Shown here: positions 28,520-61,495 of the stretch, piece by piece
How the letters are laid out: the number at the start of each line of letters is the position of its first letter
Position numbering within the stretch: position 1 is the stretch's first letter
Sequence record: PQ015379.1
Length of the DNA stretch: 64,000 bases
Reading direction: 5' to 3' (one strand)
Position numbers and translations under genes: made by a program
Notes under the pieces: generated by a model
What the model was told of the DNA's origin: nothing
The model's input: the letters and a program-made list of their open reading frames with translations, nothing else
Databases searched by the model: none

Positions 28520-28936
28520 ATGGCCACACTGACCGAGTTTATCGACGATAAAATCGCGATTGCTTTGAACTATCGCGGTCTGTCGAAATTCAACCCGGTC
28601 GAGATTATTGTCGAGGGCAACGGAAAGAAATTCGTTGTCCTCGTTTCTCTTCTCGAACCGGATACCCTGACCGTTCCGTACAACGTGACGTGGATCAACG
28701 CTGATCCCAACCACGAAGACTACAAAGTCCTGATGCGCCGCGTCGATGCTGAAAAGTACGACGACAAGGATTATCGTGGTTCGTGGTCGGTTCTTTCCAG
28801 CGTCGAAGAAATCTTCACCGAGGAACAATATTTCAAGAAGAAGCGGACCCGATTCTCGGTGCCGTTCCTGATTTCCGCCCGCCGCTGGCTTCTAACCTGC
28901 GCCTTGGCGGTTTCCGTCTTTCTGAAACTTCGGTGA
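28520..28936 (+). CDS. Fibre protein, short (0-frame) product, 138 aa
   Basis: GGGA RBS; similarity to the 27865 protein stops at EEQYF. Confidence 0.7.
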   Translation: MATLTEFIDDKIAIALNYRGLSKFNPVEIIVEGNGKKFVVLVSLLEPDTLTVPYNVTWINADPNHEDYKVLMRRVDAEKYDDKDYRGSWSVLSSVEEIFTEEQYFKKKRTRFSVPFLISARRWLLTCALAVSVFLKLR

Positions 28937-30849
28937 TTACCGACGAAGACGAACCGGTTGTGGTTTCGACCGACGATCCACGTATGAGCGACCCGCGTGT
29001 GCCAACCCCGCACAGCCACCCGGACGTTCCACGCACCATGATTTCCGCTGGTGATGGTTCGGATAAATATGTGCTGATTCCTAGCACTGATCCGGTTGCC
29101 GGTTGCCTGCTGTTCATCACGGAAGAAACCGAAGACGGAAACTTCATCGCTGAATGGTTGCCACCAACCACCGAATTTGCGTACATCGGCCCGCGCCCTG
29201 CGTCGATTGCTGTTGTCGGCCCCGCTGAAAAAGTGCGTGGCGATACCAATCATGTTTTGCGCGCTGACGTGACCATGGACGACAACACCAAGTTCTATAG
29301 CGTGCAGGCCCAATGGTCTGTCGTGAACAACGGTGATTTCGGAACCATCAACGCAAATACCGGTGTTTTCCACGCCGGTTTGGTTGCGGTTGACACCCCC
29401 GTAACGGTACGCGCCAGCTGGACCCATGCAGAATCCGGCGACACGGTTTTTGTTGATTTCATCATCACCATCATCGGCGATCCGACGTTGGTTCTGCTGG
29501 ATCACATCACCATTGTTGGCCCTGCACAATTCCTGAAATCGCAGACCGGTACTTACACGGTCGAAGCGACGTTCTCGGATGGTTCGAAACTGACCGTTAC
29601 GCCAAATGCGTTCATTTCGAGCAATACGAACGCGGGCACCTTCAGCAACGGCGTTCTGACCCCGCGTGCGAACCAAATTCGCGACGTGAGCACCAAACTG
29701 ACCGCTACCTATGCGAGCGGCGGCGTAACGCGCACTGCGACCCTCGACGTGGTTATCAAAGACCCGGCTGTTTACCCGAACACGATTGCAATCGTTGGGG
29801 CGAATACCGTGGATCAGGATTCGTTCATCGATCTGAAAGCGCACGTCGTTTTCTCCGATGCAACCGAAGCCGACGTAAACGCGCTGTGGACCCTGAGCGC
29901 CACCACGTATGCGACCATCGACCAAAACGGTCGCTTGACCGCAAAACCGCTGACTGTTCCGGGCAGCAAATCCGTAACGGTAAACGTTTCGTACACGCAA
30001 AACGGCGTGACCATCACCGCGACGAAAGTTGTGGCGATTGCGGATACGAAAAACTGGCCGGTTTCGGCTGAAATCACTGGCCCCGCAACTCTGGCCCCTG
30101 CTGGCACCGGTCAATACGTTTACGTCGTGACCTACGGTGACGGTTCGACCGCCGAGAAAATTCCGGGCACGTGGAGCACTTCGAATACTTCCATCGCAAC
30201 CATTGACGCCGAAGGTGTTGCAACCGGCGTTGCTGAAGGCGATGTGAATATTCGTGCGAACTACAGCGAAGACGGTGTGAACCTCAACGCCACCAAAGCG
30301 GTTACGGTCGCGACTGGCAGCGTAGAAATTCCGCCACTGCGTTACGGCGTAGCGATGTTCTCCAACAAGCAATTTACTGGCGGCCCGATTGCCAGCGAAA
30401 TTACTCAAGAAGAACGCGATTATGGCGTGACCGAAGAAACTTCGCCGTCCGGCAAACAGTACACGCACTGGACTGGCCTCGACGATTTCGTGTCGAAAGT
30501 CATGACCAATACGCTGGCACTGCAACCGGGTGAAACCGAGAAAAACATCGAAACCACTATCACCGTTGACGAATACGTTTACCTGATGTGGGATGCTCGC
30601 GCTGGCGACACGTTCATCGTTGACCTGCAAAACTCGTTCAACGTTACTTTTGACGGCATCAATTATCGCAATGATGTGTTGGGTAACGAAGAGGGTCTGC
30701 CGGGCTATGATCCGAACCTGCCGAAACAGCTGACCGTGCAGTTCGATGACGGCACCGGCGTTCGTCCGTGGATTATTGTTCGTAGCGAGGCAACGACTCT
30801 TCCTGAGTTCAGCCCACGCACCAACCAATACTCCATTAAATACGTGTAA
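28520..30849 (+). CDS. Ig-like-domain fibre protein, 776 aa, requiring a -1 frameshift near 28831-28834
   Basis: The -1 frame continues the alignment to the 27865 paralog, then gives about 4 Ig-like (BIG2-type) repeats and a distinct C-terminal domain. Confidence 0.7.
28831..28865 (+). other. Candidate -1 frameshift signal (T_TTC plus hairpin)
   Basis: TAT TTC, 8-nt spacer, GCGGACCCGA-TTC-TCGGTGCCGT hairpin. Confidence 0.55.
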
Positions 30850-30854
30850 GTGTG

Positions 30855-30888
30855 AAAGCGGGGAAGCACGTTTTGTTCCCCGCTTTTT
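30855..30888 (+). terminator. Rho-independent terminator
   Basis: AAAGCGGGGAA...TTCCCCGCTTT plus TT. Confidence 0.8.
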
Positions 30889-30914
30889 CCGTTAATTATG
30901 GAGAATGTTTTCTC

Positions 30915-32582
30915 ATGGCCGATACTAGCTTTGAGGAACTGGTGCCCGTCCAATTGGATTTGATTGGCCCCAGTGCTCCAATTGCGGAGCGTTCGACTTT
31001 CCAAATGCGCGCTGTCGCCACGTTTGACGATGGATCGCAACACGAAGTCGAAGCCGAATGGTCGTTAACTTCCGAACAGTACGGCACAATTACTTTGCGC
31101 GGTTTGTTTACCGCTGGTTCGGTGCAAACTGGATCGCGGCCCGTGCAGGTGCATTGTCGGTATTACCATGAGGCATCGCAGTCCACTCTGACCGGTTTGA
31201 TCGTGATTTATGTTCGCGACGTTGATACGCCGCCTGCATTGGTTTCGATTGCCATTGAAGGCAAAACCGAAGTGGAGAAAAACACGGTTGAATCCTACGT
31301 CGTGCACGCCACGTACGATAACGGTTCTTCCAAAGCTGTGGTCCCTACCACATTCGTTTCCAGCCGCCCGAGTGTCGCCACAATCGACGCCACGGGAATT
31401 GCCCATTTCCAAAAGATTCGCGGCTCGGCTATGGTTCGTTTTACGGCCTCCTACACGGAGAACGGTGTAACGCGCCAATCTGTGACCGATGTTTTGGTTG
31501 TCGATTCGTCGATTTATCCAATCAAAGCATTCGTGATCGGCCCGTCCATTGTCCTCGAAAAAGGCCGTGCACAATTTGGCCTCGACGTGCTTTTTGACAA
31601 TGGTAAAAACAACGAAGTGATCGCCACGTGGATCAGCACCAACCCTCACGCGGGAACCATCGGGCCAACCGGTGCATTCATCGCAAGTGCGGTCGAAGGT
31701 GTGGAAACAACCACGATTATTGGCACCTACGAATATGAGGGAATCGTCACCAGCGCATCAATCGAATTGAGCGTTGTGGATTTGACGGTACGCCCTGAAT
31801 CTCTGGTGATTGAAGGCCCGGCCAAAGTGCGGGAAGGCCTTGTGGTGCAGTATTACACCACGCTCATTTTCAGCAACGGCACGCGGAAAGCTGTGCATGC
31901 AAAAATTCACACGCTGACCAGTGTCGGTTCCATGGACGACGGCAACCAGTTCCACGCTGGACCGAAAGTCGAAATGGAAACCCCGGTGAATTTGATGGCC
32001 TCTTACGAAAACCTGACGGCCTACAAAAACATCGAAGTTGTGCCCACCAATTCGCCGCCTGTTCGGTCGTATATCGAACTGCGTTCACCGATGTACGTGG
32101 GCGAATATCAATCGCTGAAATTCCACGTGGTTTATGAAGACGGGACGGACATTGTTCTGCCTGCCAAGTGGGAACTTTCCAATAACCATATCGCGAACAT
32201 TTCCAGTGCTGGGGTTTTGCACGCGGTGCAGGTAATGGAAACGGCAGAACTGACGGTTTACGCTTCGACTTCCATCAGCGGTGTTGATCTGCAATCGAGC
32301 TTGCCCGTAACCATCATCGACAATCGCACGTACCCAACCGACGCCCGTATCGAAGGCCCGCAAACACTGCGTACCGGGGTGCCGACACAGTTCAATGCGA
32401 TGGTTAAATTCAGCGATGGTTCCGAACGCAAAGCGAGCGCCCTTTGGTTCTGTTCTGACGACAACGTTTTGATCAACCTTGGGATCGTTACCGCAAAAGT
32501 GCCGGGCACTTATTTGCTGCAAGTTTCCTACGCACTTCAACACGAAACAGTGACCGCAACAAAAGAGATAATCGTGACATGA
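30915..32582 (+). CDS. Ig-like (BIG2-type) repeat virion protein (555 aa)
   Basis: GGAG RBS; about six ~95-aa repeats with (L/I)xGP..V.E..(F/Y)DDGS..V.A.W pattern. Confidence 0.8.
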   Translation: MADTSFEELVPVQLDLIGPSAPIAERSTFQMRAVATFDDGSQHEVEAEWSLTSEQYGTITLRGLFTAGSVQTGSRPVQVHCRYYHEASQSTLTGLIVIYVRDVDTPPALVSIAIEGKTEVEKNTVESYVVHATYDNGSSKAVVPTTFVSSRPSVATIDATGIAHFQKIRGSAMVRFTASYTENGVTRQSVTDVLVVDSSIYPIKAFVIGPSIVLEKGRAQFGLDVLFDNGKNNEVIATWISTNPHAGTIGPTGAFIASAVEGVETTTIIGTYEYEGIVTSASIELSVVDLTVRPESLVIEGPAKVREGLVVQYYTTLIFSNGTRKAVHAKIHTLTSVGSMDDGNQFHAGPKVEMETPVNLMASYENLTAYKNIEVVPTNSPPVRSYIELRSPMYVGEYQSLKFHVVYEDGTDIVLPAKWELSNNHIANISSAGVLHAVQVMETAELTVYASTSISGVDLQSSLPVTIIDNRTYPTDARIEGPQTLRTGVPTQFNAMVKFSDGSERKASALWFCSDDNVLINLGIVTAKVPGTYLLQVSYALQHETVTATKEIIVT

Positions 32583-40748: not shown

Positions 40749-41717
40749 ATGTCGAAACGAAACTCGCGCCTGCGCGGCATCGTCGTTATGGCTGACAACC
40801 AAGAGCAAGCAGTGGAGCATTTCAGTGCTGTCGCTTCCGGCGAATATCGCGTATTGGAAAGTAAAGATGGCAAATACGCCATTGCTACCGCCAACACCGA
40901 TACGCCCCTGTTGAATCCCCTTGACGGGGAAGAAATGGTGGCCGTTCCGGAAGAGGAAAAGCATGAAATGGTCGCGACCGCATCCGCCGAAGGCGATATG
41001 GACGCGTTCTATCAAGCCTGTTCCAGCGGTTGCGGCGCACACGTTATCACGGACAGTGAAGAACTTCTGGATAAATGCCCGGCTTGCGCTTCCGACCTCC
41101 CAAAAATGGAAGACGCGAACTTGAAAAACAAACCACAACCGAAAGAAATGCTGGTTGCTGTTGCTGCCACTCGCGCCGAAGCCATCGAAGCTTTCCGTGC
41201 GCTGGCCAGCGGTAACTGCGAGACTTTCGCGGCTCAATGCGTCGATAACATGGTGCTGTCTAACCAGCCTGTGAATTTCGACATTTTCAAAGCCACCGCC
41301 GCCGAACAGGTTGCTGACTACGTGCCTCAACTGGCCGTTGCTTCCGCAATCGAAAACGGCAAAATGAAAGTGCACTATCTGGTGACTGCCTCCGATGACG
41401 GCCCGGAAATGCACATCGTCTCCAACAGCGACAAAGCGATTTTCTGCCCGGTAACTTCGATGGGTCTGGTAGACCCGGAAGTCGAATTCACCGACGAACA
41501 GAAAGCCACCGCTGCCGCCGAATTCGCCGCTACCGCTTCGGATGATGAAGACGAAGAGGAAGAGGAAGAAGAGGAATTCGAGGACGACGAAGAGGAAGAA
41601 GAGGAAGAAGAGGAAGAGGAAGACGACGGCGAAGAAGAGGAAGAAGAGGAAGACGACGACGATCTGTCTTTGGGCCTCGCTGCTGCCGGTGACAAACCAG
41701 CGAAAAAGGCGGCGTAA
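40749..41717 (+). CDS. Putative scaffold/core head protein with Zn-ribbon and poly-acidic tail (322 aa)
   Basis: CSSGCG..CPAC; ~40-residue E/D tract; AVAS and ATAS motifs; between protease and MCP. Confidence 0.55.
   Translation: MSKRNSRLRGIVVMADNQEQAVEHFSAVASGEYRVLESKDGKYAIATANTDTPLLNPLDGEEMVAVPEEEKHEMVATASAEGDMDAFYQACSSGCGAHVITDSEELLDKCPACASDLPKMEDANLKNKPQPKEMLVAVAATRAEAIEAFRALASGNCETFAAQCVDNMVLSNQPVNFDIFKATAAEQVADYVPQLAVASAIENGKMKVHYLVTASDDGPEMHIVSNSDKAIFCPVTSMGLVDPEVEFTDEQKATAAAEFAATASDDEDEEEEEEEEFEDDEEEEEEEEEEEDDGEEEEEEEDDDDLSLGLAAAGDKPAKKAA
41543..41661 (+). repeat. GAA/GAG/GAC low-complexity tract encoding poly-Glu/Asp
   Basis: Direct reading of the sequence. Confidence 0.85.
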
Positions 41718-41737
41718 AACGCAAGGTAAAACCGACC

Positions 41738-42724
41738 ATGGCTACCGCAAGTACCCAGCCGGAAACCGGCGCTGCCGCTGCTGGCACCGAGCAAATTGCT
41801 CAAACCGAACAAACCAACGTTGAACAGACCGGCGAAACCGCGACTGCCAACGCTGAAACCGCACAAACCGGTGAACAGGCTTCTGCCGTTACTACCGAAA
41901 ACGTGCAAACTGAAGAAACCCCGGTAGAAGTTTCCGCTTCGTTCGTTTCCATCGCGTCGAACGAAATGAAGGAAAATTCTGTGGATGTTAATTATGTAGG
42001 TAGCGTGCAGAACGAACCTACGTGGGTAGCTTTCCACAACGGTGTTCCTTTCGCGAAAGCTGTTGCTTCCGCCGCCGAAAACAAAGCGACTTTCGCTGAT
42101 CCATCTTTCGGTCGTGCTTTCAAAGCAATCGCCGCCGAACAAGGTGTGCAGGCTGCCATCGAGCAGCTGCGTTTCGAAGAAATCAAACCTGTTGTGCAAA
42201 TCGCGCAGGTTGTGGCCGAACAAATCCAGACCCAAGTGTCCGAACAGGGCGCCGTTCTGGCTGAAGCTTCCGCCAAAGATCAATCGGAACTCGCTGAGCG
42301 TTTCCGTGGCGCACTCGCCACCGCTGCGCACGGTATCAACACCGGTTATTTCCGTGACACTTCGAACCCGATCCTGACCGCGCTGGCTTCGACCCTCGAA
42401 TCCATCGGCCTCGAAGGCGCCGAAGATTTGCTGCAACGTGCATTCCTCGATCACTCGCCGGAATACCACGCAGCCATTTTGGCCAAAGCTGGCGAAATCA
42501 TGAAATATGATGCCGTCGTGCAAAACCAGATGGCGACTGCTGTCACCCAAATCGAACCGAAAAATGTGGTTGCGACCGCATCTTCTTCGCTGTCGATGGG
42601 CCGCCCGGTTCAACGTCCGGTGCAAGTGCAAAAACAGGAAAGCGAACTCGCTACCGCTTCGGCACAGCAGTCGCAGCCTTCCAACTTCAAATCCAAGCTG
42701 ACCGGCTTGAAACTGTTCCGCTAA
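41738..42724 (+). CDS. Putative capsid scaffolding protein (328 aa)
   Basis: Low-complexity A/T/E/Q N-terminus, helical body, three ATAS motifs; upstream of MCP. Confidence 0.55.
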   Translation: MATASTQPETGAAAAGTEQIAQTEQTNVEQTGETATANAETAQTGEQASAVTTENVQTEETPVEVSASFVSIASNEMKENSVDVNYVGSVQNEPTWVAFHNGVPFAKAVASAAENKATFADPSFGRAFKAIAAEQGVQAAIEQLRFEEIKPVVQIAQVVAEQIQTQVSEQGAVLAEASAKDQSELAERFRGALATAAHGINTGYFRDTSNPILTALASTLESIGLEGAEDLLQRAFLDHSPEYHAAILAKAGEIMKYDAVVQNQMATAVTQIEPKNVVATASSSLSMGRPVQRPVQVQKQESELATASAQQSQPSNFKSKLTGLKLFR

Positions 42725-43519: not shown

Positions 43520-44626
43520 ATGTTGAACCAAATCAAAGGCGCCCGCATGGTCCTCGCTGGCACCGGTGCCCCGCTGGAAGAACTGCGCTACTCGAAAGGC
43601 GCTGAACTGGCCCTGAGTTCCGCGACCGGCGAATTCAACGCCTCTTCCACCAAGGATCTGGCGATCCAAATCGGTCGTCTGATGGACGCCGTAGGCAAAG
43701 GCATCGTCGTTCCTGAAAATCAAATCGCCACCGCTTCGAGCAAAGAGCAGCGCGAACACCGCCGCGAAATCATGCGCGAAGCCATGGCCAGCGATGACAA
43801 CTGGCAGGCACTGGGCGCCAACATCGCCCAGCAGGTTTACGAGCAGAGCGAGCGTGACGGTTTCCTGCGCAAACTTTCGCAAGGTAACACCCTGCGTCAA
43901 GGTGAAGTGCAGCGCGTTCCAATGCCTCCGCACGATTCGATGGCCGTTGTCGCCACCGGTCCTGCTGGCGTCGGCTACCAGAACATTCGCGCTCGCCAAT
44001 TCCTGCCAGCGGAATTCGAAATCATCGCGAACGTTCGCGTGAATGCGCTGGACATGGAACAGGTTTCCGGCGACCTGCTGGAGCACGCGTACAACGACGC
44101 GCTGCAATCCATCATGGTTCAGGAAGATCGCCTGTGGAAAATCGCTGCTGACGCCACCGTCGGCATGATGAACCCGCTGGAATACATCGCTGGCGAACTG
44201 ACCTCGAAAAACCTCGGTCGTCTGCGCACCGCCGTGACCGACTGGAACCTGCCAGCCACCACCGCGATCATCAGCAACGATTACTGGTCCGATATCATCG
44301 GTTCGAACGATTTCGCGACCATGCTCGATCCGATCACCAAGTACGATTTGGCCCTGAACGGTCAACTCGGTACTCTGGTTGGTCTGCAACTGCTGACCGA
44401 TGGTTTCCGTGCACCGAACCAGAAAGTTCTGGATCGTGGCGAAATCTACGTCGTGGCTGCCCCGGAATACCACGCTGCCTACTCGACCCGTGGCGGTATC
44501 CAATCCCGTCCGGTTGACTACGCGCACGAAGGTTCCACCGCCAAAGGCTGGATGCTGTCCGAAGCGTTCTCGTTCGTTCTGGCCAACAACCGCTCCGTCG
44601 TGAAAGGCAAGCGTCTGGTCCGTTAA
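43520..44626 (+). CDS. Major capsid protein (HK97 fold, 368 aa)
   Basis: Position after protease and scaffolds, extreme codon bias, HK97-type E-loop/P-domain pattern (FLRKL..EDRLW..GTLVGLQLLTD..EIYVV). Confidence 0.82.
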   Translation: MLNQIKGARMVLAGTGAPLEELRYSKGAELALSSATGEFNASSTKDLAIQIGRLMDAVGKGIVVPENQIATASSKEQREHRREIMREAMASDDNWQALGANIAQQVYEQSERDGFLRKLSQGNTLRQGEVQRVPMPPHDSMAVVATGPAGVGYQNIRARQFLPAEFEIIANVRVNALDMEQVSGDLLEHAYNDALQSIMVQEDRLWKIAADATVGMMNPLEYIAGELTSKNLGRLRTAVTDWNLPATTAIISNDYWSDIIGSNDFATMLDPITKYDLALNGQLGTLVGLQLLTDGFRAPNQKVLDRGEIYVVAAPEYHAAYSTRGGIQSRPVDYAHEGSTAKGWMLSEAFSFVLANNRSVVKGKRLVR

Positions 44627-44641
44627 TAAATCTCCGCACTT

Positions 44642-44675
44642 TCCGGATCGAAAGGAGCGCCCCTTTCGATCTGGA
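44642..44675 (+). other. Stable hairpin after MCP (no U tract)
   Basis: TCCGGATCGAAAGG...CTTTCGATCTGGA. Confidence 0.6.
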
Positions 44676-44704
44676 TTGTGTTAGAAACTTTTGGAGATTT
44701 AGCG

Positions 44705-45250
44705 ATGGATATTCAGGCACTGTTTTCGCTTGCGGCAATGTGTTGCAAAAACGGAAGAGACGAATTGGCTTTGCAGGTTCTGAAACAGGCTTGCGAATGC
44801 CCTGAATTCTCTTCGGTCCTGAACTGTTCGCTACAGCCCGCTTTGGATGCCGCCCCTGATTTCATGGGCGCTGTTCAAGGCGCGCCGGTTCCTTGCGCAG
44901 AAGGCGGCGCGGATGGGAAACTCGACGGCCTCGATTCGTTCGTGGATTATGTCGATAAACCTAGCCCCGACGTTGCCAAGTTTGGTACTGCCCCAAATTC
45001 GGAAAATTCCATCAGCCCTTCGCTGCATGGAAATGATGGTGTGGCCTTCCGGCAAATTGTCGGTGTGGCTTCCGCGATCTACGCACAAAAGCAGTATCTG
45101 GACGATGGTGAGCACATCATCCTCGATCCTCAACTATCGGCTATTGCTTCGGTCGATCTTGAACCATTTGACGACGAATCGTTGGTGGCGCGGGAATCCC
45201 CGAAAGCGAGTGAACCGCTCATTCCGGGCCGTATCAGGATCAAGCTGTAA
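44705..45250 (+). CDS. Hypothetical head-associated protein (181 aa)
   Basis: GGAG RBS; GVAS and AIAS motifs. Confidence 0.65.
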   Translation: MDIQALFSLAAMCCKNGRDELALQVLKQACECPEFSSVLNCSLQPALDAAPDFMGAVQGAPVPCAEGGADGKLDGLDSFVDYVDKPSPDVAKFGTAPNSENSISPSLHGNDGVAFRQIVGVASAIYAQKQYLDDGEHIILDPQLSAIASVDLEPFDDESLVARESPKASEPLIPGRIRIKL

Positions 45251-47425: not shown

Positions 47426-49018
47426 ATGACCCTTCAAAACGGCAGTAATACGTCGGCGGGTGTGTATGGCGGTGAAGTCGATAACTCGCAATCGGCTTCC
47501 TCGACGTATCCAACCACGGGGGCCATCGTAAGTGAATCGAATCGCGGACGGGTTGGGGTGCCAACACTCGTTACCAGCGTCGGTGAATTCCGGGCCAAAT
47601 TCGGCCTGCGTGATGCTTCGCTTACCTTCGGTCACTTCTGCGCCGAACGCTTCCTGAAAAAAGCACAACGTTTGTGGATGTATCGTGTTGATACTGAAGC
47701 GAATTACGGTAACGCTTCGGTCGTATCGAAAGATGGTTTCGCGGTTGCCAAGGCAGCCACGCAAGGCTATCTGGCCCCGGACACCGAACACAACCAATTG
47801 CCTGACGAAATCGGTTTCATTTACGCGGCTGACCCCGGTACGTGGAACAACCAGCTGCGCGTGCTGATGTACCCTGATCAGTACGACGTGGAAAACGAGA
47901 TTTTCGTCCTGCAAGTTTTCGAAACCAACATGAGCGTTCCGGTCGAAACTTATCGCGGCACTTTGCGCGAAAAAGTCGATGGCCAACGCCGCCAGCTGAG
48001 CATTGCGTACCAGCTGGAAAACATGGAATCCCGCGTGCGTTTCATGGTGAACGAAAATCACCCTGAATACGTTGCGTCCCAAGGGGCCAAGCGCCTGATC
48101 AACGCGATTGTAGAAGTTGATCTGTCGTACGGTGACAACGGGCGCGTAGCTGACGCCGGGGATATCATCCAAGGCTGGGGCGAATTCGAGAACGAAGACG
48201 ATTTCGAAGTACGCCTTCTGATCAACGCCGGTTATTCCGATCCGGGCATTCAGCAGCAGATGATTCAGCTGGCTGAAACGCGCCGCGATTGTTTCGCAAT
48301 TCTCGACATTCCGTCCGATCAGCAGACCGTGACGCGTGCCGTGAATTATCGTCGGAATACTCTCAACGCTGAAACCAGTTTCGCCGCGCTTTATTGCTCG
48401 GATATTCTGGAAGTCACCGACGACAACCAAGAAGTCTACGTGCCTTGCTCGGGCGCCATCGCTGCTGTGTTCGCACAGTCGGACGAAATGCGCGATGTAT
48501 TCTGGGCACCGGCTGGTGTGATTCGTGGTGTGATCGAAGAAATCAACGGCGTGCGTCACAAGTACACGCTGAACGAACGCAACATTCTCGATCAGAACCA
48601 AATCAACATGATCCACAAGCAGGCCGGTTACGGTTACTGCGTGTGGGGCGCGCAGACCCTGCAATCGACCAAATCGGCGTTGCAGGATGTACCGGTTCGC
48701 CGTCTGATCAACCTGATCGAAACCACTGCGAAATACGATGTTCTGGTCGGCCTGTTCGATCCGAACGACGAATTCCTGTGGGCGCAGTTGCGGGGTGTTG
48801 TTGAACGGATTCTCGATCCGATCAAACGCGCACGCGGCCTGTATTTCTCGGCTGTGTACTGCGACAAAAACACCAACCCTCCGGCGCAGATTGCAAACGG
48901 TGACGTTGCACTGGTGTACGTGATCCAACCGACTCGCTATGCGAAGCGGATCAAGTTCACGACTACCGTTGCGGCCACCGGTCAACTGAGCACTGCCGTG
49001 GAACAAATCGCGGCGTAA
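47426..49018 (+). CDS. Tail sheath protein 2 (530 aa)
   Basis: AGVY N-terminus, FWAPAG, RNILDQNQIN, VWGAQTL, VPVRRL, CDKNTNPP. Confidence 0.93.
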   Translation: MTLQNGSNTSAGVYGGEVDNSQSASSTYPTTGAIVSESNRGRVGVPTLVTSVGEFRAKFGLRDASLTFGHFCAERFLKKAQRLWMYRVDTEANYGNASVVSKDGFAVAKAATQGYLAPDTEHNQLPDEIGFIYAADPGTWNNQLRVLMYPDQYDVENEIFVLQVFETNMSVPVETYRGTLREKVDGQRRQLSIAYQLENMESRVRFMVNENHPEYVASQGAKRLINAIVEVDLSYGDNGRVADAGDIIQGWGEFENEDDFEVRLLINAGYSDPGIQQQMIQLAETRRDCFAILDIPSDQQTVTRAVNYRRNTLNAETSFAALYCSDILEVTDDNQEVYVPCSGAIAAVFAQSDEMRDVFWAPAGVIRGVIEEINGVRHKYTLNERNILDQNQINMIHKQAGYGYCVWGAQTLQSTKSALQDVPVRRLINLIETTAKYDVLVGLFDPNDEFLWAQLRGVVERILDPIKRARGLYFSAVYCDKNTNPPAQIANGDVALVYVIQPTRYAKRIKFTTTVAATGQLSTAVEQIAA

Positions 49019-49043: not shown

Positions 49044-49553
49044 ATGCCTAAAGTAACGTTGGACGAAGCGTACAGCCTGCTCGACCCGATGCTGAATGAC
49101 AACTTTGAACTTCTGTTCACTGACATTCCGGGCGGCGGTGACGGTCGTCAACTGCGGATTCAATGCTTGGGTGCTGCTTTGCCCGGCGCGTCTCTGCAAA
49201 CTGTGGAAGTCGAACTCTTCGGCCACAAACTGATTTTTGCTGCGCGTAAAACCTTCAGCCACTCGATGACTGTGGCGCTGCACGAAGTTTACGACGCTCG
49301 CACCTATCAGGCCCTGAAAGATTGGGCAGCCGTGGGTCGTGCGACTCAAACTCAAACCGGTGGCTTCCACGATGCGTACATGCGCACTGCGGAACTGACG
49401 GTCTTCGATCAGACTGGTGCGGATGCTGCGAAGTGGAACATTCACCGGATGTTCCCGACCGAAATTTCCGAATACCAGTTCGAGGGTTCCGGTGGCCAAG
49501 CGCTGCGTCAAGACGCAACGTTTGCCTACGGTTACGTCGAACGTACCCTCTAA
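49044..49553 (+). CDS. Tail tube protein (169 aa)
   Basis: Follows the sheath; gp19-like pattern ending in ATFAYGY. Confidence 0.8.
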   Translation: MPKVTLDEAYSLLDPMLNDNFELLFTDIPGGGDGRQLRIQCLGAALPGASLQTVEVELFGHKLIFAARKTFSHSMTVALHEVYDARTYQALKDWAAVGRATQTQTGGFHDAYMRTAELTVFDQTGADAAKWNIHRMFPTEISEYQFEGSGGQALRQDATFAYGYVERTL

Positions 49554-49564
49554 GGAAATGAAAG

Positions 49565-49598
49565 AAGCCCGGTGCAAGTTTTTGCATTGGGCTTTTTT
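49565..49598 (+). terminator. Rho-independent terminator
   Basis: AAGCCCGGTGCAA...TTGCATTGGGCTT plus TTTT. Confidence 0.8.
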
Positions 49599-49616
49599 CG
49601 CTTGTGTGGGGGCCTT

Positions 49617-50120
49617 ATGCCGATCCTAACGCTCGAAGAATTTGCAGAAAAACGCTCGGGCGACCGTAGTCCGATGCTGGATTTTTATTGGTATTGTGTC
49701 GAGCTTCCGTTCGACCTTGACCCGTCTTACGTGGAAACGGTAACGCTGCCGGTTCCATCCATCAACATGAAGCCCGTTTTCATGGGCGCTCGCTTCCGCC
49801 AGTATCCGGGGTTCCGTGAACTGAGCGCGTTTGACATTAGCTTTTACGAAGACGTTTCCATGCGTTCGTTCAAGTATGTCGAGGACTGGCGAAACCGTGT
49901 GATGGACGCCGAGACAGGAACGTATTTCCTGCCCGGTAATTACAAACGTTCCATGAAATTTGCGTTGACCGATGGACGTACCACCGACACGCCGATCATG
50001 ACCGTCAAACTGATTGACGTTTGGCCAACTGTGACCAGCCCGATTGAACTCACGAACAACGGCGGCCAAGCGATCAAGATCCGACAAAACTTTGCGATTG
50101 ACGATGTATCTTACGAATAA
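49617..50120 (+). CDS. Second tube-fold protein (gp19/gp54-like)
   Basis: Colinear similarity to the 49044 product (TLEE..DPML, ISFYED, VWPT). Confidence 0.65.
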   Translation: MPILTLEEFAEKRSGDRSPMLDFYWYCVELPFDLDPSYVETVTLPVPSINMKPVFMGARFRQYPGFRELSAFDISFYEDVSMRSFKYVEDWRNRVMDAETGTYFLPGNYKRSMKFALTDGRTTDTPIMTVKLIDVWPTVTSPIELTNNGGQAIKIRQNFAIDDVSYE

Positions 50121-50132: not shown

Positions 50133-50915
50133 ATGAAATTCGATAACACCAACCTGCCGTCGCGGCTGATCCCGTACGCCGTAAAAACCATCGAGGTGAA
50201 TCCGTTTCGCCCGTTGCACTTGCCGTATCTGTCGGAAGCGATTCTGACGAAAAACGATGCGCCGCTGATCGAAGCGGTTGGGCAAGTTATCGATTTCGAT
50301 GTGAACCAGCTTACCGATGGTGATTTTTATTGCATCCTGACGTGGCTGCGTTTCAATTCGCGTGACCTGCCGATCTACGCCGAGTGGGAATGTGAAGGTA
50401 TCGTGTTCCGTCGCGCTGGTGATGAATCCGGCAAGATTTACACGATGGAAGATATCGACCAAATGGCCGAGCAATACTTCGCGGCCAAGGGCACCGAAGC
50501 GGAAGCCCTGATGGAAGATCCGAGCAAGATCGAATGGCTCGAAGAAGACTGCGACCACTACAACAAACAGGATGTGAAGTTCGAAGATTTCGAACTGAAA
50601 TTCATGGACGAATCCGAACTGGACGAACGTCTGGATTATCCACGTGTGCGTGATCTGGTGGCCTACAAAGAACTCGGGTCCGACGTGCGCAACCAGAAAG
50701 TGATTGGCCCTGTGCGCTACCTGAAAGAGGGTAAGACGCTGCACGAACGCCTGCACTCCCTCGACAAAATCGAAATGGAATTGTTCGATAAAGCGGCCCG
50801 CGCCCACTTCACCATGGACCACGGGGTTCTGCAACGCGTGTACAAGAAATGCCCACGTTGCGGCACCGAACACCCGTTCAACGTTTCCATTGATGCGCAG
50901 TCGTTCTTCGTCTGA
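50133..50915 (+). CDS. Baseplate hub assembly/tail chaperone (T4 gp26-like), paralog 1
   Basis: QLTDGDF..LTWLRFNS; C-terminal CPRCG. Confidence 0.6.
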   Translation: MKFDNTNLPSRLIPYAVKTIEVNPFRPLHLPYLSEAILTKNDAPLIEAVGQVIDFDVNQLTDGDFYCILTWLRFNSRDLPIYAEWECEGIVFRRAGDESGKIYTMEDIDQMAEQYFAAKGTEAEALMEDPSKIEWLEEDCDHYNKQDVKFEDFELKFMDESELDERLDYPRVRDLVAYKELGSDVRNQKVIGPVRYLKEGKTLHERLHSLDKIEMELFDKAARAHFTMDHGVLQRVYKKCPRCGTEHPFNVSIDAQSFFV

Positions 50916-51886
50916 TGAAAGAAGTTTTGGATGCGTCGTTTATCGAGGTCGGGGACTTGCTGACTGGCAACCCCGGCAAAGATGATTTCTACGACTTCAA
51001 CCGAATTTATCTGCGGCAGTTTACCCTTCGGGAATTGCCGCTGCTGCACACCGGTATGACGGCAAAGACGCGGCCACACCAGCACATCATCCGTGCGGTG
51101 CAAATGTGCTGCAACGTCGATATCGACCAATTGACGGACGGCGATTTCATGTACCTGATGGCCCGTCTGCGCAAAAGTTCGTTCCCTGAATTTCCTGTTC
51201 GCGCCCAGTACACCTGTAACAACATGGTTTACGTCAACGCGAAAAACAATATCGGTTTCGGTGTGACGGCCAAAGATGCAAAACGGCTGGGCTTTACGTT
51301 GCAGCCGTGTGGCCACGCGCAGTCGGAAGTCGTGCCGCATACGCAGGTCATGACCCACACTTTGCCTGACCACAAAAACCGATTGATTCACCCGCGAATC
51401 TCGCTGCCTCGCGTGGGCACGCTAACCGACTATTACGAATACGTGGAAGATTTCCCACGTTTCAAATACGTCGGGGATATCGCACGCTGGGTCAAGCCGG
51501 GCAAAACGTTCAGGGCCAAGCTGAATTACCTCATGGCACAGCCGGACATGACGCTGTTCCAAGAAATCGAAAAAGTGAAGAACGATTGGTTCCATGGAAT
51601 CACTGAAAAAGTTCGTCTTCGCTGCGGGCAGTGCAACCACGTGATGTACCACGAATCCAGCCCGTCGATGCTCAATTTCTTTGCCGATAATTCCGACAAA
51701 GACATTTACAACATGGCCTATAACCTCATGTCGAAATTTGGCGTGAACGTCGATCTTGATATGCCTGTGCAATGGTTCCTCTATACGCACTCGGTGTTGG
51801 CTGCCGACGTTCGCGAACAGGAACAGAAAGCGAAGGCCGCACAGCACGGATCGGGCAACCGAGTTATGGGCACCCGTAGAAGGTAA
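50915..51886 (+). CDS. Baseplate hub assembly/tail chaperone, paralog 2
   Basis: QLTDGDF..MARLRKSS; C-terminal CGQC. Confidence 0.6.
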   Translation: MKEVLDASFIEVGDLLTGNPGKDDFYDFNRIYLRQFTLRELPLLHTGMTAKTRPHQHIIRAVQMCCNVDIDQLTDGDFMYLMARLRKSSFPEFPVRAQYTCNNMVYVNAKNNIGFGVTAKDAKRLGFTLQPCGHAQSEVVPHTQVMTHTLPDHKNRLIHPRISLPRVGTLTDYYEYVEDFPRFKYVGDIARWVKPGKTFRAKLNYLMAQPDMTLFQEIEKVKNDWFHGITEKVRLRCGQCNHVMYHESSPSMLNFFADNSDKDIYNMAYNLMSKFGVNVDLDMPVQWFLYTHSVLAADVREQEQKAKAAQHGSGNRVMGTRRR

Positions 51887-51891: not shown

Positions 51892-54423
51892 ATGGCTGCA
51901 CTTGAGGCACTAAACGAAATTGTTGATAAGCACAGTTCTGACCAAGAAAAGAAAGAACCAGTGCAACGTCGCACGGCCCGTGAGTCGGCACCACGCCTCA
52001 TGCAGCATGCGCACGTGCCGCAAAATGACGGCGTAACTTTCACCGGCCAGCGGAAACATTCCTATGCGAAAACTGGCCCGCGCAATAACCAACAGCAGCA
52101 GAAATCCAACCTGCCTGCTGTGCGTACGCAAACCGGTGGCCAACACGACCGGCAGGCCGACGCAATCGAAGGGCAGACGCAGGTAATTCGTTCGCAGGCT
52201 ATGGCCTCGCAGAAACAATCGAATTTGCTGCAACAACAATCCGGTTTGATGCAAGATCAGTTGCAAGCTACGCAGGAAATGTCAGACGTGATGAATCGTC
52301 TGGCGACCTACATGCAGAAGCAAATGAACAAGCTTGAACCAAAAGTTCAACACACGGGTAACACCTACGAAGGTGAATTCACCCGGATCAACGACAAGCA
52401 AATGCAGGCGCAAGAACGCCGCATGACCGTGCTTGATGAAATTCGTGAAAAGCGCCGTGAAATGCAGCGTGCACGTGCCGCAAAACAGGAACGTGATCGC
52501 CTCGGTCGTTTCACCCGAAGCGCACCGCAAAAGATCGGCCCGAAAATGCAGCGCGTTGGTGGCATGGGTGGCCAACTCGGCGGCATGATGGAAGGCATGG
52601 GCGGGCGTGCTGCTGGTATGGCTGCGCGTGCTGCTGGGCCATTGCTTGCACTGGCAGCTGCCTACTACGGCACCAAAGCCCTGACTGCTGCGTCTGACAA
52701 TTACACGTTCGAAAAGAAAGATTCGAACATGGTCACGCGTGGCTGGCAAAACACCAAGGATTGGGTAGGCGATAAATTCCGTAGTGATCCGGGCGAATCG
52801 TTCCTTGATCAAGCGTCTGCGAAATCGGGGGCGAAACAGCAAGGCGAACTGATGGGTGAAACTGCCCGTCACAAAGATTTCGGTTCGATCAGCGCGGCGT
52901 TTGAATCTGGCGGCAAGGGAGTTGGCACCGTATCGACCGGCAAAGGCGATAACGGCGGCGTTTCCTACGGCAAACATCAGCTGTCGTCGAAAGCCGGGAC
53001 TATGACCGCGTTTCTGCGTTCGGAAGATGGCCAAAAATACTACAACGATTTTCGTGGTATGGCCCCCGGCTCGGAAGAGTTCAACAAGAAATACAAAGAG
53101 GTTGCAGAACGCGACGGCGAAGGTTTCGACAAAGCGCAACAGGCCTTCACCACAAAATCGCATTACAACCCGGTCGCCGCGTGGTTTGAAAAGCAATACG
53201 ATATCAAACTGGACGAACGCTCTCGCGCTCTGAAAGAAGCGATTTATTCGGTTGCTGTTCAATACGGTACGGGCACCGCCAAGTCTGTTTTGGGTGACGC
53301 ATTCGGCAACCGCGATATCACCAAAATGGGCGATGCGGAACTGATCGACCGCCTGCAAGAAACACGGGCCGCTACGGTTTCCACGCGTTTCCGTTCCAGC
53401 AGTCAAGACGTTCAAGATGGCGTTTACAAACGCGCAGGCACCGAAAAAGCTGCGCTGTTGAAAATGCTGAACGAAGAGCAAGGCGGCCCCGGTTCGGCTA
53501 AGGCTTCCGGTTCTGGAATCGGCTCACAATATTCACAACAAATGATTGGTGCTTATGGTGGGAAACCATCGGGTGCAAATCAATCGGGAACTGCGTCGAA
53601 TGGTACGGTCGGCGTTATGGCCATGCCTCAAGGTGGCGGCGGTAGTCCATCTGGTGCTGGTGACGAAGCCGGGGGCGGTACAGCGGCTGCTATGTTGTCC
53701 CCTGCTGACGGTGCACTTTATGCACTGGGTCAAAAGCACGTGCGCCCCAATGATACCTCGGTAAACATGTCCGGTTTGAACGACAAATTCAAGCAGGCAT
53801 TTTTCACCATGGTTGGCGACTGGGTGCAGAACCACTCGGGCACCATGGTAAACGTCGCGTCCGCTTTCCGTACGCGTGCTGAACAGGAAAAGCTGTGGAT
53901 CAAATACGGACGTAACACCAAACGCGTTGCACGTCCGGGCACCAGCCGTCACGAATCCGGTTTTGCAATCGACATTGATCGCAATTCTGCGAGCGCTATG
54001 GAAGGCGCAGGCCTGTTCAAGAAATACGGTTTCCATCGTCCACTTTCCAACGAGCCTTGGCACGTTGAAATGGTCGGTGCCGGTAAGGGCGGTGCAGGCG
54101 GCGGTCCACAAGTCGCGGCTGCAAATGCTAGCCCACAACTGATGCAGCAAGCCGCTTCGCAAGAAATGGATAAGGCGGCAGAAACCACGGTAAAACGTGC
54201 CGAGGAAAACACCAAGGGCGCAGAAAAAACGTGGTCGCAGAAACTCAACGAAAAAGGCGGAAAACCTCCTACCGATTCTGAAACTGGCGGCACCTCGAAA
54301 GCAGCTGAGGCCAATGGTGCAAAAGCCAAGGCTGGGCTTGAGGAAGAGGAAGAAGAGGAAGAGGTAGACGAAAAGAAGATGATATTGGTGAAAACGACAC
54401 CAAAATCATCAACAAAGAAGTGA
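51892..54423 (+). CDS. Tape-measure-like/tail lysin with lysozyme-like and M15 peptidase domains (843 aa, 0-frame product)
   Basis: SAAFESGG..GDNGGVSYGKHQLSS (VgrG3 C-terminal-like hydrolase); SAFRTRAEQ..GTSRHESGFAIDI..EPWHVE (M15/VanY-like Zn peptidase). Confidence 0.8.
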   Translation: MAALEALNEIVDKHSSDQEKKEPVQRRTARESAPRLMQHAHVPQNDGVTFTGQRKHSYAKTGPRNNQQQQKSNLPAVRTQTGGQHDRQADAIEGQTQVIRSQAMASQKQSNLLQQQSGLMQDQLQATQEMSDVMNRLATYMQKQMNKLEPKVQHTGNTYEGEFTRINDKQMQAQERRMTVLDEIREKRREMQRARAAKQERDRLGRFTRSAPQKIGPKMQRVGGMGGQLGGMMEGMGGRAAGMAARAAGPLLALAAAYYGTKALTAASDNYTFEKKDSNMVTRGWQNTKDWVGDKFRSDPGESFLDQASAKSGAKQQGELMGETARHKDFGSISAAFESGGKGVGTVSTGKGDNGGVSYGKHQLSSKAGTMTAFLRSEDGQKYYNDFRGMAPGSEEFNKKYKEVAERDGEGFDKAQQAFTTKSHYNPVAAWFEKQYDIKLDERSRALKEAIYSVAVQYGTGTAKSVLGDAFGNRDITKMGDAELIDRLQETRAATVSTRFRSSSQDVQDGVYKRAGTEKAALLKMLNEEQGGPGSAKASGSGIGSQYSQQMIGAYGGKPSGANQSGTASNGTVGVMAMPQGGGGSPSGAGDEAGGGTAAAMLSPADGALYALGQKHVRPNDTSVNMSGLNDKFKQAFFTMVGDWVQNHSGTMVNVASAFRTRAEQEKLWIKYGRNTKRVARPGTSRHESGFAIDIDRNSASAMEGAGLFKKYGFHRPLSNEPWHVEMVGAGKGGAGGGPQVAAANASPQLMQQAASQEMDKAAETTVKRAEENTKGAEKTWSQKLNEKGGKPPTDSETGGTSKAAEANGAKAKAGLEEEEEEEEVDEKKMILVKTTPKSSTKK
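54372..54410 (+). other. Candidate -1 frameshift signal (A_AAG plus 12-bp hairpin)
   Basis: GAC GAA AAG then GATGATATTGGTG-AAAACGA-CACCAAAATCATC. Confidence 0.55.
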
Positions 54424-55451
54424 TGCCTCCGACCGTTGACGTGATGGGTTCCGGCGAAACCACGCGCACCCCGGAAGAACAGGCGCTCTATGAGCAATAC
54501 CTGAAAAAAGCTGGCGGTGATCCACGCGGTGTTCCTGAATCGGTTTCGAATCCGGGTAAAAATCCGTTCGGAAATCCAGAATTGCAACGCACTAATCCGG
54601 GGGCGGGAACGCCTACGTGGTCGCAGCGCAATGCGGGCCGTGGTGGCAACGGTGTGCCGGGTGCTGGTGGCGGTTACACGTCTGGTCAATATGGGCAGCG
54701 TGCACGGCCATGGTCGCAAACGCAAACCGGGCGCGCAATTACTGGCGCAGCAACAAAAATCGGTAACGTGTATGGCTACGGTTCGTTCGGCACGATGGCA
54801 CCCGGTGTGTTTGGTGGCCTGCGAAAAGTTGACGGAAAAGTAAATGATGTTCTGAACAAAGTTCCGGGCCTTCGTGAGCTTTCCCGTTTGCCGGGTATTC
54901 CGCAGATTCCACGGCTGTCTAACGGCCTACCGAGTTTCGGAAATATCGTGACAGGCGTTGCGGACAAAGCCGCTGGTTTGTTCGGCGGGAACGATGCGCC
55001 GGTTACTGTGCCTGCCAATGAACGCCCGCGCATCATGAATGGCCAACGTGTGACTTACGACGGCCCGGCTGTTACATCGACCGATCAAATCGGCACCACT
55101 TCTGTGAATGCTCCGGTGGCTGCAATGTCGCCTGCATCGCCAACCTATTACAACAACGACGCCCCGGTCGTAACGCGCAGCGCTGGCGCCCCAGTCAACA
55201 CGATGGCCGCCACACAAGCGACTGCAATGCCCGTCACTGAAAAAGTCGAACGAAATACTTTCGACGGCGTGCAAAAAGTTGCGATCAGTTCGTCTGACGT
55301 TCCAATGGGCGGCGGTGAAGCTGCACCAGCAGCACCGGGGGCACCGGGCGCAGGATCTGGCGGTGCTAAAAACGACATGCCGTCTATCGATGATGTTCCG
55401 GCGATCATGGATGAATACGGACTTCTGTTTGTAAACTTTGGGATGGTTTAA
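54375..55451 (+). CDS. G/P/T-rich C-terminal extension of the 51892 protein via -1 shift (fusion 1186 aa), or a separate ORF from 54420
   Basis: -1 frame open from 54342 with typical codons (EDDIGENDTKIINKE); no strong RBS before 54420/54423. Confidence 0.65.
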   Translation, partial: EDDIGENDTKIINKEVMPPTVDVMGSGETTRTPEEQALYEQYLKKAGGDPRGVPESVSNPGKNPFGNPELQRTNPGAGTPTWSQRNAGRGGNGVPGAGGGYTSGQYGQRARPWSQTQTGRAITGAATKIGNVYGYGSFGTMAPGVFGGLRKVDGKVNDVLNKVPGLRELSRLPGIPQIPRLSNGLPSFGNIVTGVADKAAGLFGGNDAPVTVPANERPRIMNGQRVTYDGPAVTSTDQIGTTSVNAPVAAMSPASPTYYNNDAPVVTRSAGAPVNTMAATQATAMPVTEKVERNTFDGVQKVAISSSDVPMGGGEAAPAAPGAPGAGSGGAKNDMPSIDDVPAIMDEYGLLFVNFGMV

Positions 55452-56180: not shown

Positions 56181-56510
56181 ATGCCAGTTTTTGATCAGCG
56201 TGAATTTGTGAGCGTGGATGAATTCGGGATCGATCCACTGTTGGACGATTCGTATGAGGCCATCGAAGGCACCACCAGCTACCGAACGCACACCGTCACC
56301 ACTTCGGAACAATTCAACCCCGGCCTGATCGCCTACAACACGTATCGCAACGTGAAGTGGTGGCGGGCCATCATGGTTTACAACGGTTTCATCGACATTT
56401 GGGAAATCACGGAGAATTCGAAAATCCGCATTCCCGATATCAACGAAATGACTACGCGGTTGCAGCGCGCTAAGACCGGGGCGGCGTCTGCCGTAACGAT
56501 CACGCTGTAA
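56181..56510 (+). CDS. Baseplate wedge protein, gp53/LysM-like
   Basis: IAYNTY..WWRAIMVYNG..IRIP. Confidence 0.7.
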   Translation: MPVFDQREFVSVDEFGIDPLLDDSYEAIEGTTSYRTHTVTTSEQFNPGLIAYNTYRNVKWWRAIMVYNGFIDIWEITENSKIRIPDINEMTTRLQRAKTGAASAVTITL

Positions 56511-59042: not shown

Positions 59043-59049
59043 GGAACAA

Positions 59050-59397: not shown

Positions 59398-59542
59398 GGC
59401 CCCGAAATACAAAACTCGCGTCCGACCGACTTCTCGCGGCGAGTTTATGGCCTACAGCTTTTTTGGTTACTACGTGGGGTACGGATCGTCGATTGAATCC
59501 GCCGTACTTCGCCACCGCAAAATTCTATGTGAGTTGACCTGA
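59369..59542 (+). CDS. Small hypothetical protein
   Basis: AAGGA RBS; fills the gap and ends in a TGATG overlap with the next ORF. Confidence 0.4.
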   Translation: MQPKDHLKSKAPKYKTRVRPTSRGEFMAYSFFGYYVGYGSSIESAVLRHRKILCELT

Positions 59543-59886
59543 TGAAAATCGAAATGAATCTGACTGTCCCGGCCAACAACGGCGTGCCTGCATGGCTGAA
59601 CTGGCTTCGTGTCTACTTCAAACTGTGGCACCCGGCCCTGATGTACACGCTGTTTATCTGGTATCTCTGCGGCACGGTTTTCGACGGTCCGAAAATTCTT
59701 TTCAGCAAAGTAATCGACGGGTACACCGTCACCATCATGGAATCCTCGCGCACTTGGGGTTCGTGGGATCATTTCCTGTTGGTCGTGCTAGGTGCCTGTA
59801 TATGGAGCTACACTAGCGCGACTTTCCCGCGCTGGTGGAAAACCATTCGCCGCCTGAATTACAACCGCGTTTCGCGGATCGGTTAA
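59542..59886 (+). CDS. Membrane protein (2 predicted TM helices)
   Basis: ALMYTLFIWYLCGTVF and FLLVVLGACIWSY. Confidence 0.6.
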   Translation: MKIEMNLTVPANNGVPAWLNWLRVYFKLWHPALMYTLFIWYLCGTVFDGPKILFSKVIDGYTVTIMESSRTWGSWDHFLLVVLGACIWSYTSATFPRWWKTIRRLNYNRVSRIG

Positions 59887-59953
59887 AAATGAACGGGATT
59901 TGCCTTGCGGTAGATCCCGTTTTTCGTATCTAAAAACTAAAAGGAATTGCCTG

Positions 59954-60214
59954 ATGCCTCGCGCCCTGTTTGTTTGGATTATTTGCGTTTCGATCACCGT
60001 GGTTGCTGTGTGCCTTTCACACATCGGCATTCTGACCTTCGGCATTTGGTCCCGCTATCAGGGCGTGATGCCGGAAATGTTTTGGTCGGTCGTGGCCGCT
60101 GCTGTGCTGCCTCTGTTCTTTTTGAGTTTCCTGCTGATTTGCTGCACCTGCCTTTTTGTTTGGTCGGTGAAGCGTCTCTTCCAACGTTCTGCAAACCTTC
60201 CGGATTTCATGTGA
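59954..60214 (+). CDS. Membrane protein (2 predicted TM helices)
   Basis: AAGGA RBS; two long hydrophobic stretches. Confidence 0.6.
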   Translation: MPRALFVWIICVSITVVAVCLSHIGILTFGIWSRYQGVMPEMFWSVVAAAVLPLFFLSFLLICCTCLFVWSVKRLFQRSANLPDFM

Positions 60215-60468
60215 TGAATCGTGTTGGCCTTTGGTTGATTGTCGTACTTATGCCAAGCTTGATGCTTGCGCTTTTGGGTTGTGCTGTGATGATTGTTAAA
60301 CTGGCATTGCAGCAGTTTACGTGGATGAATGAACACGCCATGAATTGGCATGCGCTAGGCTTTTCGGTGCTCGGTTTGTTCGGCGTATTCATTTCGATTT
60401 CGTTGCTTCGTGATGGCATTCTGCTTTCCAAAACAGCTTTCAACGACATTCGGGCATTAAAAGGGTAA
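60214..60468 (+). CDS. Membrane protein (2 predicted TM helices)
   Basis: TGATG overlap; two hydrophobic stretches. Confidence 0.6.
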   Translation: MNRVGLWLIVVLMPSLMLALLGCAVMIVKLALQQFTWMNEHAMNWHALGFSVLGLFGVFISISLLRDGILLSKTAFNDIRALKG

Positions 60469-60472
60469 TTTA
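60466..60472 (+). promoter_or_regulatory. TAATTTA putative late promoter motif
   Basis: Overlaps the upstream stop, precedes the 60525 gene. Confidence 0.55.
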
Positions 60473-60524
60473 ATGATAGGGTTCGCATTTATGCGTTCAT
60501 CTTTCAACCAAAAAAGGATCTTCT

Positions 60525-61454
60525 ATGAACGTCCAGAATTACACTGGCGTGCTGGCTGCGATCATTGCAGCCCAGCAGGAAGCCGGTGATCCCTCGGCGA
60601 TTCGTCGCATCACTGTCACCGAAGCTGAAATGGATGAAATCGTTAAATCTGGTGCGTTCCGGAAAACGACCAATACCCACTACGGCGGCTCGGATACTCC
60701 GGTGTTTTCCAACATCGAATCCGGCTCGGACGGCAAAGTCATTTCGCTGTACTTCCTCGGCACCCTGATTTGTCTTGGCCCGTGGGAACCGACCGGCGCC
60801 CTTGCCGGTGTTACCTATGGCCCGCTGACTGTTCAGCAAAAAGGCAAAACCGCGTTCGTGCGTAACGTCAACGGCACCGATTACATGCTGGTCGGCAAAG
60901 GCAATCCGGCTGATGATTTTGTGCTTGGTAAAAACGCAAATATCGAACTGGGGATCGCTGTTCGCAAGGTCAACGATTCCACCTACTACGGCGACGGCGC
61001 GGGCGGTTTCGAAATCGAGTTGGACGAAGCGCTGGGCGAGTCGTGGAACTTCGCGGTTACTGTTGGTTCGCTGAAAGCTGGCGTGACCGACGTAACGGAA
61101 ATGTACGACATTTCGTTGTTCCTCGACGTGGACGGGACCGGCGCAGAAAACGCGATCAAGTGGGATCTGCAATACACCCCGCGTCTCGAAGGCGGTGGCA
61201 AAAACTACGCGTGGTTCAATCAGGGCATTCGTGTAATCAACGACGCGACGACCAACCCTGAAGGCACCGTTTCGCAGATGATTCAGCGTTACGAATTCCC
61301 GTTCATTTCCCACGCGTTGCCTGCCTCGACCGAACGCACCAAACAAGGCGTTCCGCTCGGCCTCTACGGCATCAAACTGGTGGCCACGCCACGCCTGACT
61401 GCCGGTGACGCGGTAGAAGTCGAAGTGCTGGCGACCGTCGCAAAAAAGTCGTAA
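60525..61454 (+). CDS. Putative virion appendage protein, short product (309 aa)
   Basis: AAGGA RBS, biased codons, beta-rich; ends GCA AAA AAG TCG TAA. Confidence 0.75.
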   Translation: MNVQNYTGVLAAIIAAQQEAGDPSAIRRITVTEAEMDEIVKSGAFRKTTNTHYGGSDTPVFSNIESGSDGKVISLYFLGTLICLGPWEPTGALAGVTYGPLTVQQKGKTAFVRNVNGTDYMLVGKGNPADDFVLGKNANIELGIAVRKVNDSTYYGDGAGGFEIELDEALGESWNFAVTVGSLKAGVTDVTEMYDISLFLDVDGTGAENAIKWDLQYTPRLEGGGKNYAWFNQGIRVINDATTNPEGTVSQMIQRYEFPFISHALPASTERTKQGVPLGLYGIKLVATPRLTAGDAVEVEVLATVAKKS

Positions 61455-61495
61455 AACCTGTTCCGCGACGTTCGCTAGTTGTCGGTGGTTCAGGT
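61442..61495 (+). other. Programmed -1 frameshift signal (A_AAA_AAG plus hairpin)
   Basis: Canonical heptamer 61442-61448, 7-nt spacer, ACCTG..CCGCGAC/GTCG.TGG..CAGGT stem. Confidence 0.8.

Follow-up and report, generated by a model that had tools for sequence, protein, structure and literature searches.

A conserved gene with a probable programmed -1 ribosomal frameshift and one-base gene splits in the record of Pseudomonas phage HRDY3

The DNA considered here, called the window, is a stretch of 64,000 nucleotides (nt) that corresponds with 100% identity to positions 186001-250000, plus strand, of the record of Pseudomonas phage HRDY3 (PQ015379.1, 313,683 bp). At three places on its plus strand, an open reading frame (ORF) is overlapped at its end by another that continues in the -1 frame (Table 1). 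These places, referred to as sites 1 to 3 in their order along the window, had been noticed in a preliminary description made from the sequence alone, and the three ORF overlaps are present where it put them. The description interpreted them as a recoding programme of three -1 shifts, each adding a distal module to a virion protein. HRDY3 has only one relative among the phages that have been deposited, jumbo phage Lu11, with a DNA identity of ~72% and a mean identity of 62% over the best protein matches. Further relatives were drawn from IMG/VR and metagenome assemblies, in contigs of ~300-320 kb, the closest reaching 85-93% protein identity. The window was scanned by tblastn with Lu11 ORFs from two adjacent pieces of the Lu11 record (78 kb) placed end to end. 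A literature search found no paper mentioning HRDY3, no proteome or ribosome profiling data on HRDY3 or Lu11, and no paper on frameshifting in jumbo phages.

Table 1. Genes with a change of frame in the window and in the rest of the HRDY3 record, with the parts of the site 3 gene
Feature	Coordinates (window, unless stated)	Strand	Basis
Gene with probable programmed -1 frameshift (site 3)	60525..62254	+	Two-frame layout, conservation
Zero-frame ORF of site 3, 309-residue beta-sandwich protein	60525..61454	+	ORF, AlphaFold2 (AF2) model
-1 open frame of site 3, 281 codons, first possible start codon 100 codons in	61409..62254	+	ORF
Overlap of both frames at site 3, in-phase A_AAA_AAG one codon before the zero-frame stop	61409..61454	+	Sequence
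Nearly invariant stretch, candidate frameshift stimulator	61455..61500	+	Conservation, predicted hairpin
Tail-region immunoglobulin (Ig)-like (Big_2) gene, PHROG 13325 family, broken once, -1 type (site 1; ORF 28520..28936, downstream open frame 28753..30849)	28520..30849	+	One-base loss relative to all relatives
Tail lysin gene, tape-measure position, broken once, -1 type (site 2; ORFs 51892..54423 and 54342..55451)	51892..55451	+	One-base loss relative to relatives
Head-region gene 'ATPase' (PHROG 20988), broken once, -1 type	40749..42724	+	One-base loss in homopolymer
Both type II topoisomerase subunit genes and a baseplate-region gene, one-base frameshifts in HRDY3 only	Record 152079..156049 (L051), 83966..87114 (L104); outside the window		

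The zero-frame ORF of site 3 ends just beyond an in-phase A_AAA_AAG heptamer, one of the motifs that promote -1 shifting most efficiently in E. coli (PMC4066793). The two-frame layout is common to ten of the 12 relatives, namely Lu11, where the counterpart is annotated as two coding sequences (CDSs; Lu11_0042 and Lu11_0041), and nine metagenomic genomes with upstream protein identities of 41-89%. In 11 of 13 genomes the heptamer is invariant, in phase and 0-3 nt before the zero-frame stop, and in these genomes the -1 frame continues for 232-282 codons with no stop, and no ATG, GTG or TTG occurs in its first 34-101 codons. In each of the ten genomes that have this module, homology to the extension found in the window sets in with the residue that directly follows the stop. 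Ahead of any possible start codon there are 44 codon columns without gaps; of these, 33 vary at position 3 of the -1 frame, 16 at position 1 and 15 at position 2, and such third-position-biased variation is the hallmark of a translated frame. By itself the motif is unremarkable, since AAAAAAG is not over-represented in the window (18 found versus 21 expected). Among the 19 canonical heptamers found in phase in the long ORFs of the window, a long -1 extension follows at site 3 only (268 codons, versus at most 65, with a median of 11, for the other 18). Conservation also peaks locally: in the 60 nt counted from the start of the heptamer, 26 of 30 and 24 of 30 columns are invariant, compared with 10-14 of 30 elsewhere in the gene, as expected of a slippery site followed by a stimulator. 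On these comparative sequence grounds, the case that the site 3 gene carries a conserved programmed -1 ribosomal frameshift, unannotated before, is convincing.

Under such a mechanism, most ribosomes would terminate one codon after the heptamer and release the beta-sandwich protein encoded in the zero frame. Some would shift back by a single nucleotide at the pair of Lys codons and translate ~265 more codons, so that the long isoform would gain a further C-terminal module, predicted to be all-beta. The stimulator is probably formed by the 50-60 nt that follow the heptamer, which are almost invariant and may act as a hairpin; the predicted stem-loop starts 7 nt downstream of the heptamer. An exact-pattern search for the cassette in IMG/VR returned five contigs, all of them already known.

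The upstream protein was modelled by AF2 as beta-sandwich domains with a predicted local distance difference test score (pLDDT) of 87. A fold search with this model in the PDB gave no match at E 0.001 or better. The search in BFVD returned jumbo-phage proteins with E of 1e-9 to 1e-16, including one that bears the description 'possible surface protein/cell adhesion'. The family profile of the upstream piece, searched against the PDB, retrieved 8fwg_f1, i.e. phage Milano LP1 gp16 (E 2.6e-4, a weak 23 bits), a protein that decorates the capsid and contains an Ig-type domain (PMC10491603). The upstream domain resembles, at the level of models and profiles, Ig-type capsid-decorating or adhesion-like phage proteins. 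The -1 extension is predicted to be all-beta and its AF2 model is poor (pLDDT 46), too poor to carry the 'beta-propeller' of the preliminary description beyond that prediction. Profile searches of this downstream module against the PDB gave only matches with E > 0.01, and searches in Pfam and PHROG found no match for either piece of the gene.

One relative, L059 (41% identity; ENA contig NODE_6_length_27013, 3382..4080), keeps the heptamer next to the stop and has a 232-codon -1 extension with no detectable similarity to the module of the window; this extension had no match in Pfam or PHROG either. The conservation of the cassette in front of an unrelated module suggests that modules are exchanged behind a fixed frameshift cassette. 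A milder proposal than genome-wide recoding, with much better support, is that the cassette at 61409..61500 serves as a fixed 'adaptor' behind which this clade of jumbo phages exchanges unrelated distal modules.

At sites 1 and 2, the split was found in the HRDY3 record only. Both pieces of the site 1 gene align to the same PHROG profile of 776 positions, over 1-110 and 103-776 respectively, the upstream piece being the N-terminal domain of ~110 residues alone. The homologue Lu11_0079 is one ORF of 782 residues and all 14 IMG/VR relatives have a single open frame of 777-787 codons (777-804 codons when given together with Lu11_0079), the gene being unsplit in 15 of 15 relative loci. An intact protein of 776 residues, 91% identical, is encoded on a 320-kb ENA contig. 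At site 2, the gene codes for a VgrG3-like_C lysozyme-like domain, a VanY peptidase domain and a C-terminal third rich in G, P and T. Its homologue Lu11_0056 is one ORF of 1168 residues, and a single open frame of 1114-1232 codons is found in 13 of 13 loci. The product of the site 2 gene is probably tail-borne and cell-wall-degrading. In the DNA alignments of both sites, HRDY3 lacks exactly one base that every relative has, in near-identical A/G-rich surroundings.

Further splits of the same type were identified in HRDY3. Inside the window, the head-region gene, flanked by the genes for the prohead protease and the major head protein and annotated as two 'ATPase' CDSs, has pieces that correspond to two parts, 1-334 and 370-649, of a single PHROG with 652 positions. 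Its homologue Lu11_0067 is one ORF and a single open frame of 643-659 codons is present in 11 of 11 metagenomic relatives, so that none of the 12 relatives, Lu11 included, has a split gene. Outside the window, the genes of the two type II topoisomerase subunits, broken in HRDY3, are intact in 34 of 34 and 33 of 34 relatives; the sixth split gene, the baseplate-region homologue of Lu11_0227, was compared with Lu11 alone, where it is one ORF. In total, the comparison with Lu11, which covered positions 47-253 kb of the HRDY3 record (~206 kb) with small-gene regions left out, yielded six splits, one per gene, all of the -1 type and none of the +1 type. The reverse comparison gave no gene split in Lu11 and intact in HRDY3. 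The shortened products are singletons among ~15 billion proteins. Frame-change signals at ORF 44518..44802 and at many antisense ORFs were rejected as due to shadow ORFs of conserved genes.

One-base gaps and motifs of the overlap zones were examined in five of the six split genes. No canonical in-phase heptamer was found in any of these five zones, and neither shuffle tests nor the comparison with unsplit relatives disclosed a hairpin specific to the split genes. The fold downstream of site 1 has a z of +0.5 relative to shuffles; that of site 2 is marginal (z -2.0, 7 of 200 shuffles) and its hairpin core is also found in relatives with an unsplit gene. On this evidence the splits in the site 1 and site 2 genes are not programmed and are no recoding signals, and neither are those in the head-region gene and in at least three genes outside the window.

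Several elements of the preliminary description are revised by these comparisons. Its programme of three shifts does not hold, sites 1 and 2 being unique to the HRDY3 record with one frame in every relative. The hairpin it saw after each site is not borne out by the folds, site 3 (see below) included. The distal module thought to be added at site 1 is the main body of a 776-residue protein, ~85% of its length. The restriction to virion genes is contradicted by the same -1 splits in both topoisomerase subunit genes. It had also considered indel error to be low, pointing to the intact SNF2 and polA genes, and had missed the fourth split of the window; three more lie outside. With splits occurring about once per 34 kb, a gene of 6 kb would be expected to be intact and this argument weighs little. 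A response to the supply of tRNA-Lys or tRNA-Phe found no support; no tRNA gene is present within the window. The description had itself named the outcome that would overturn it, i.e. sequencing indels at sites 1 and 2 and a single ordinary frameshift remaining, which is essentially the outcome here, with sequence error as the likely and real mutation as the less likely origin of the losses.

The six one-base losses are most likely deletion-type assembly or base-calling errors. Like known single-base deletion artefacts of assemblies, the splits are confined to one record, always involve one base in the deletion direction and occur whatever the function of the gene; errors are also the best explanation for their presence in conserved genes of a viable isolate. 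That the losses are instead real and recent mutations, in genes that work as two polypeptides through restart or are dispensable in the laboratory host, is unlikely. Real mutations would fit the three of five examined gaps located outside long homopolymers and the split points of the lysin and 'ATPase' genes, both located where a poorly conserved linker of low complexity joins two conserved halves. Start codons overlapping the upstream stop at two sites would also suit restart; however, these are ancestral internal codons, the downstream ATG of site 2 being an ancestral internal Met, and not adaptations. Moreover, six simultaneous frameshifts would be needed in conserved genes (topoisomerase subunits, lysin, baseplate-region) of a viable isolate, all six of the deletion type and no loss shared with any relative. 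The least probable explanation of all is a programme, specific to this lineage, in which ribosomes would slip by -1 at non-canonical sites, A_AAG tetramers among them, to generate long forms of several proteins. A_AAG is a known slippery motif, and three overlap zones contain it in phase (chance probability 0.03-0.20 each); every frame change is -1 and the lysin-gene site is followed by the marginal hairpin. Nevertheless, no relative shows conservation of these sites, even at 85-93% protein identity, canonical heptamers are lacking, the tetramer of the first gene does not coincide with the junction that homology points to, A_AAG is lacking from the topoisomerase sites and the hairpin core exists in unsplit relatives. 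Neither the splits outside virion genes nor an 'added module' that makes up most of the first protein agrees with such a programme. A recoding programme of virion genes is very unlikely, and it is highly improbable that all six losses are real and the genes, topoisomerase subunits included, are expressed by non-canonical -1 slippage as a lineage-specific, genome-wide recoding.

For site 3, the rival explanation is that two separate genes are present, the downstream one being started at a non-canonical codon or by termination-reinitiation. This is how both GenBank records annotate the locus, with two CDSs, and two distant relatives possess the upstream gene without the extension. Two genes are nevertheless distinctly improbable: a conserved frame with third-position-biased variation already runs for 48-100 codons before the annotated starts, the homology of the extension starts directly after the stop, and reinitiation does not predict an invariant in-phase heptamer beside the stop together with a local peak of conservation. 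The joint interpretation, in which site 3 is a genuine frameshift and the other splits are one-base losses of the HRDY3 record rather than recoding, is given a probability of roughly 80%.

A number of observations count against this interpretation. The energy of the site 3 hairpin is no better than that of shuffled sequences (z -0.5), and no covariation was detected in its stem, the stretch being invariant and the one divergent relative not alignable. The two distant relatives (45-48% identity) that keep the upstream gene have neither the cassette nor the extension. Concerning the other splits, only two of the five examined gaps, that of the 'ATPase' gene among them, are in homopolymers of 6 bases in the relatives; the other three are in runs of 1-3 bases, short in comparison with typical homopolymer artefacts. 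An in-phase A_AAG tetramer is present at two of the HRDY3-only junctions, where low-level slippage is possible. Finally, the assignment of the site 3 product to the virion surface is plausible and is suggested by structural and profile similarities that are weak.

The organization of site 3 recalls that of E. coli dnaX and of the transposases of the IS3/IS911 family, with A_AAA_AAG in phase, a spacer of ~7 nt to a predicted stem-loop and high local conservation (PMC4066793). The outcome differs, a shortened product being made from dnaX and a fused transposase from the insertion sequences (IS), whereas at site 3 a long C-terminal extension would be added to a probable structural protein. In contrast to those cassettes, the stimulator of site 3 is a predicted one, no upstream Shine-Dalgarno-like element was seen and an Rfam search returned no frameshift element or other match. 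Phage structural proteins lengthened by frameshifting are known, such as the T7 capsid proteins 10A/10B, Ig-like domains on capsid and tail proteins and the tail chaperones G/GT. As in these cases, site 3 would yield a minor long isoform with an extra C-terminal module, the short form ending just past the slip site; unlike in those proteins, the appended module belongs to no detectable family and is replaced by an unrelated one in a distant relative. The upstream product shares the beta-sandwich build of decoration proteins of the Milano LP1 gp16 and T4 Hoc type, through profile and BFVD matches, although the similarity to LP1 gp16 is weak, no PDB fold matches and no frameshift is reported for LP1.

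The preliminary description was right that none of the three sites is the classic G/GT site, none of them being at the chaperone position between tube and tape measure. Contrary to a tail chaperone frameshift, site 3 is not between the tail-tube genes (49044..50120) and the lysin gene in tape-measure position; it is located ~5 kb beyond the latter, after baseplate-like and nucleotide-metabolism genes. The tandem genes 50133..50915 and 50915..51886 were considered as a G/GT pair and rejected, both being full-length paralogues (PHROG 13792) with no frameshift signal seen. These paralogues occupy the usual position of the tail chaperones, between the tube genes and the lysin gene.

The surrounding tail region comprises two tail-sheath genes (26220..27860 and 47426..49018) and two tail-tube genes (49044..49553 and 49617..50120), as in Lu11. 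A paper cited in PMC7412058 deals with a sheath of two components in the related phage PaBG. Following the first sheath gene, the three neighbours 27865..28506, 28520..30849 and 30852..32582 have their N-terminal domain in common (PHROG 13325 / 14098) and form a family of tandem paralogues with Big_2 Ig-like repeats. Several product names of the HRDY3 record appear to be over-transferred, for instance 'portal protein' for a protein of 196 residues (record 165203..165793), 'tail sheath' for a 109-residue ORF (window 56181..56510) and the 'ATPase' label of the head-region gene.

These results bear first on the use of the records. Those of HRDY3 and Lu11 both miss a conserved frameshift gene and call a shortened downstream CDS in its place, and at least six split genes of the HRDY3 record should be checked against the reads before anything is built on them. 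More generally, several frame changes in one genome call for a comparison with relatives before they are interpreted as a programme. Regarding phage biology, the short and long isoforms of surface proteins put forward in the preliminary description find no support at sites 1 and 2 and are retained at site 3, where a conserved -1 shift affects a probable surface or decoration protein and the likely outcome would be a short/long pair of a virion surface protein. Lu11-like jumbo phages would thus obtain an isoform pair of a probable surface-decoration protein, and may display an additional module through frameshifting.

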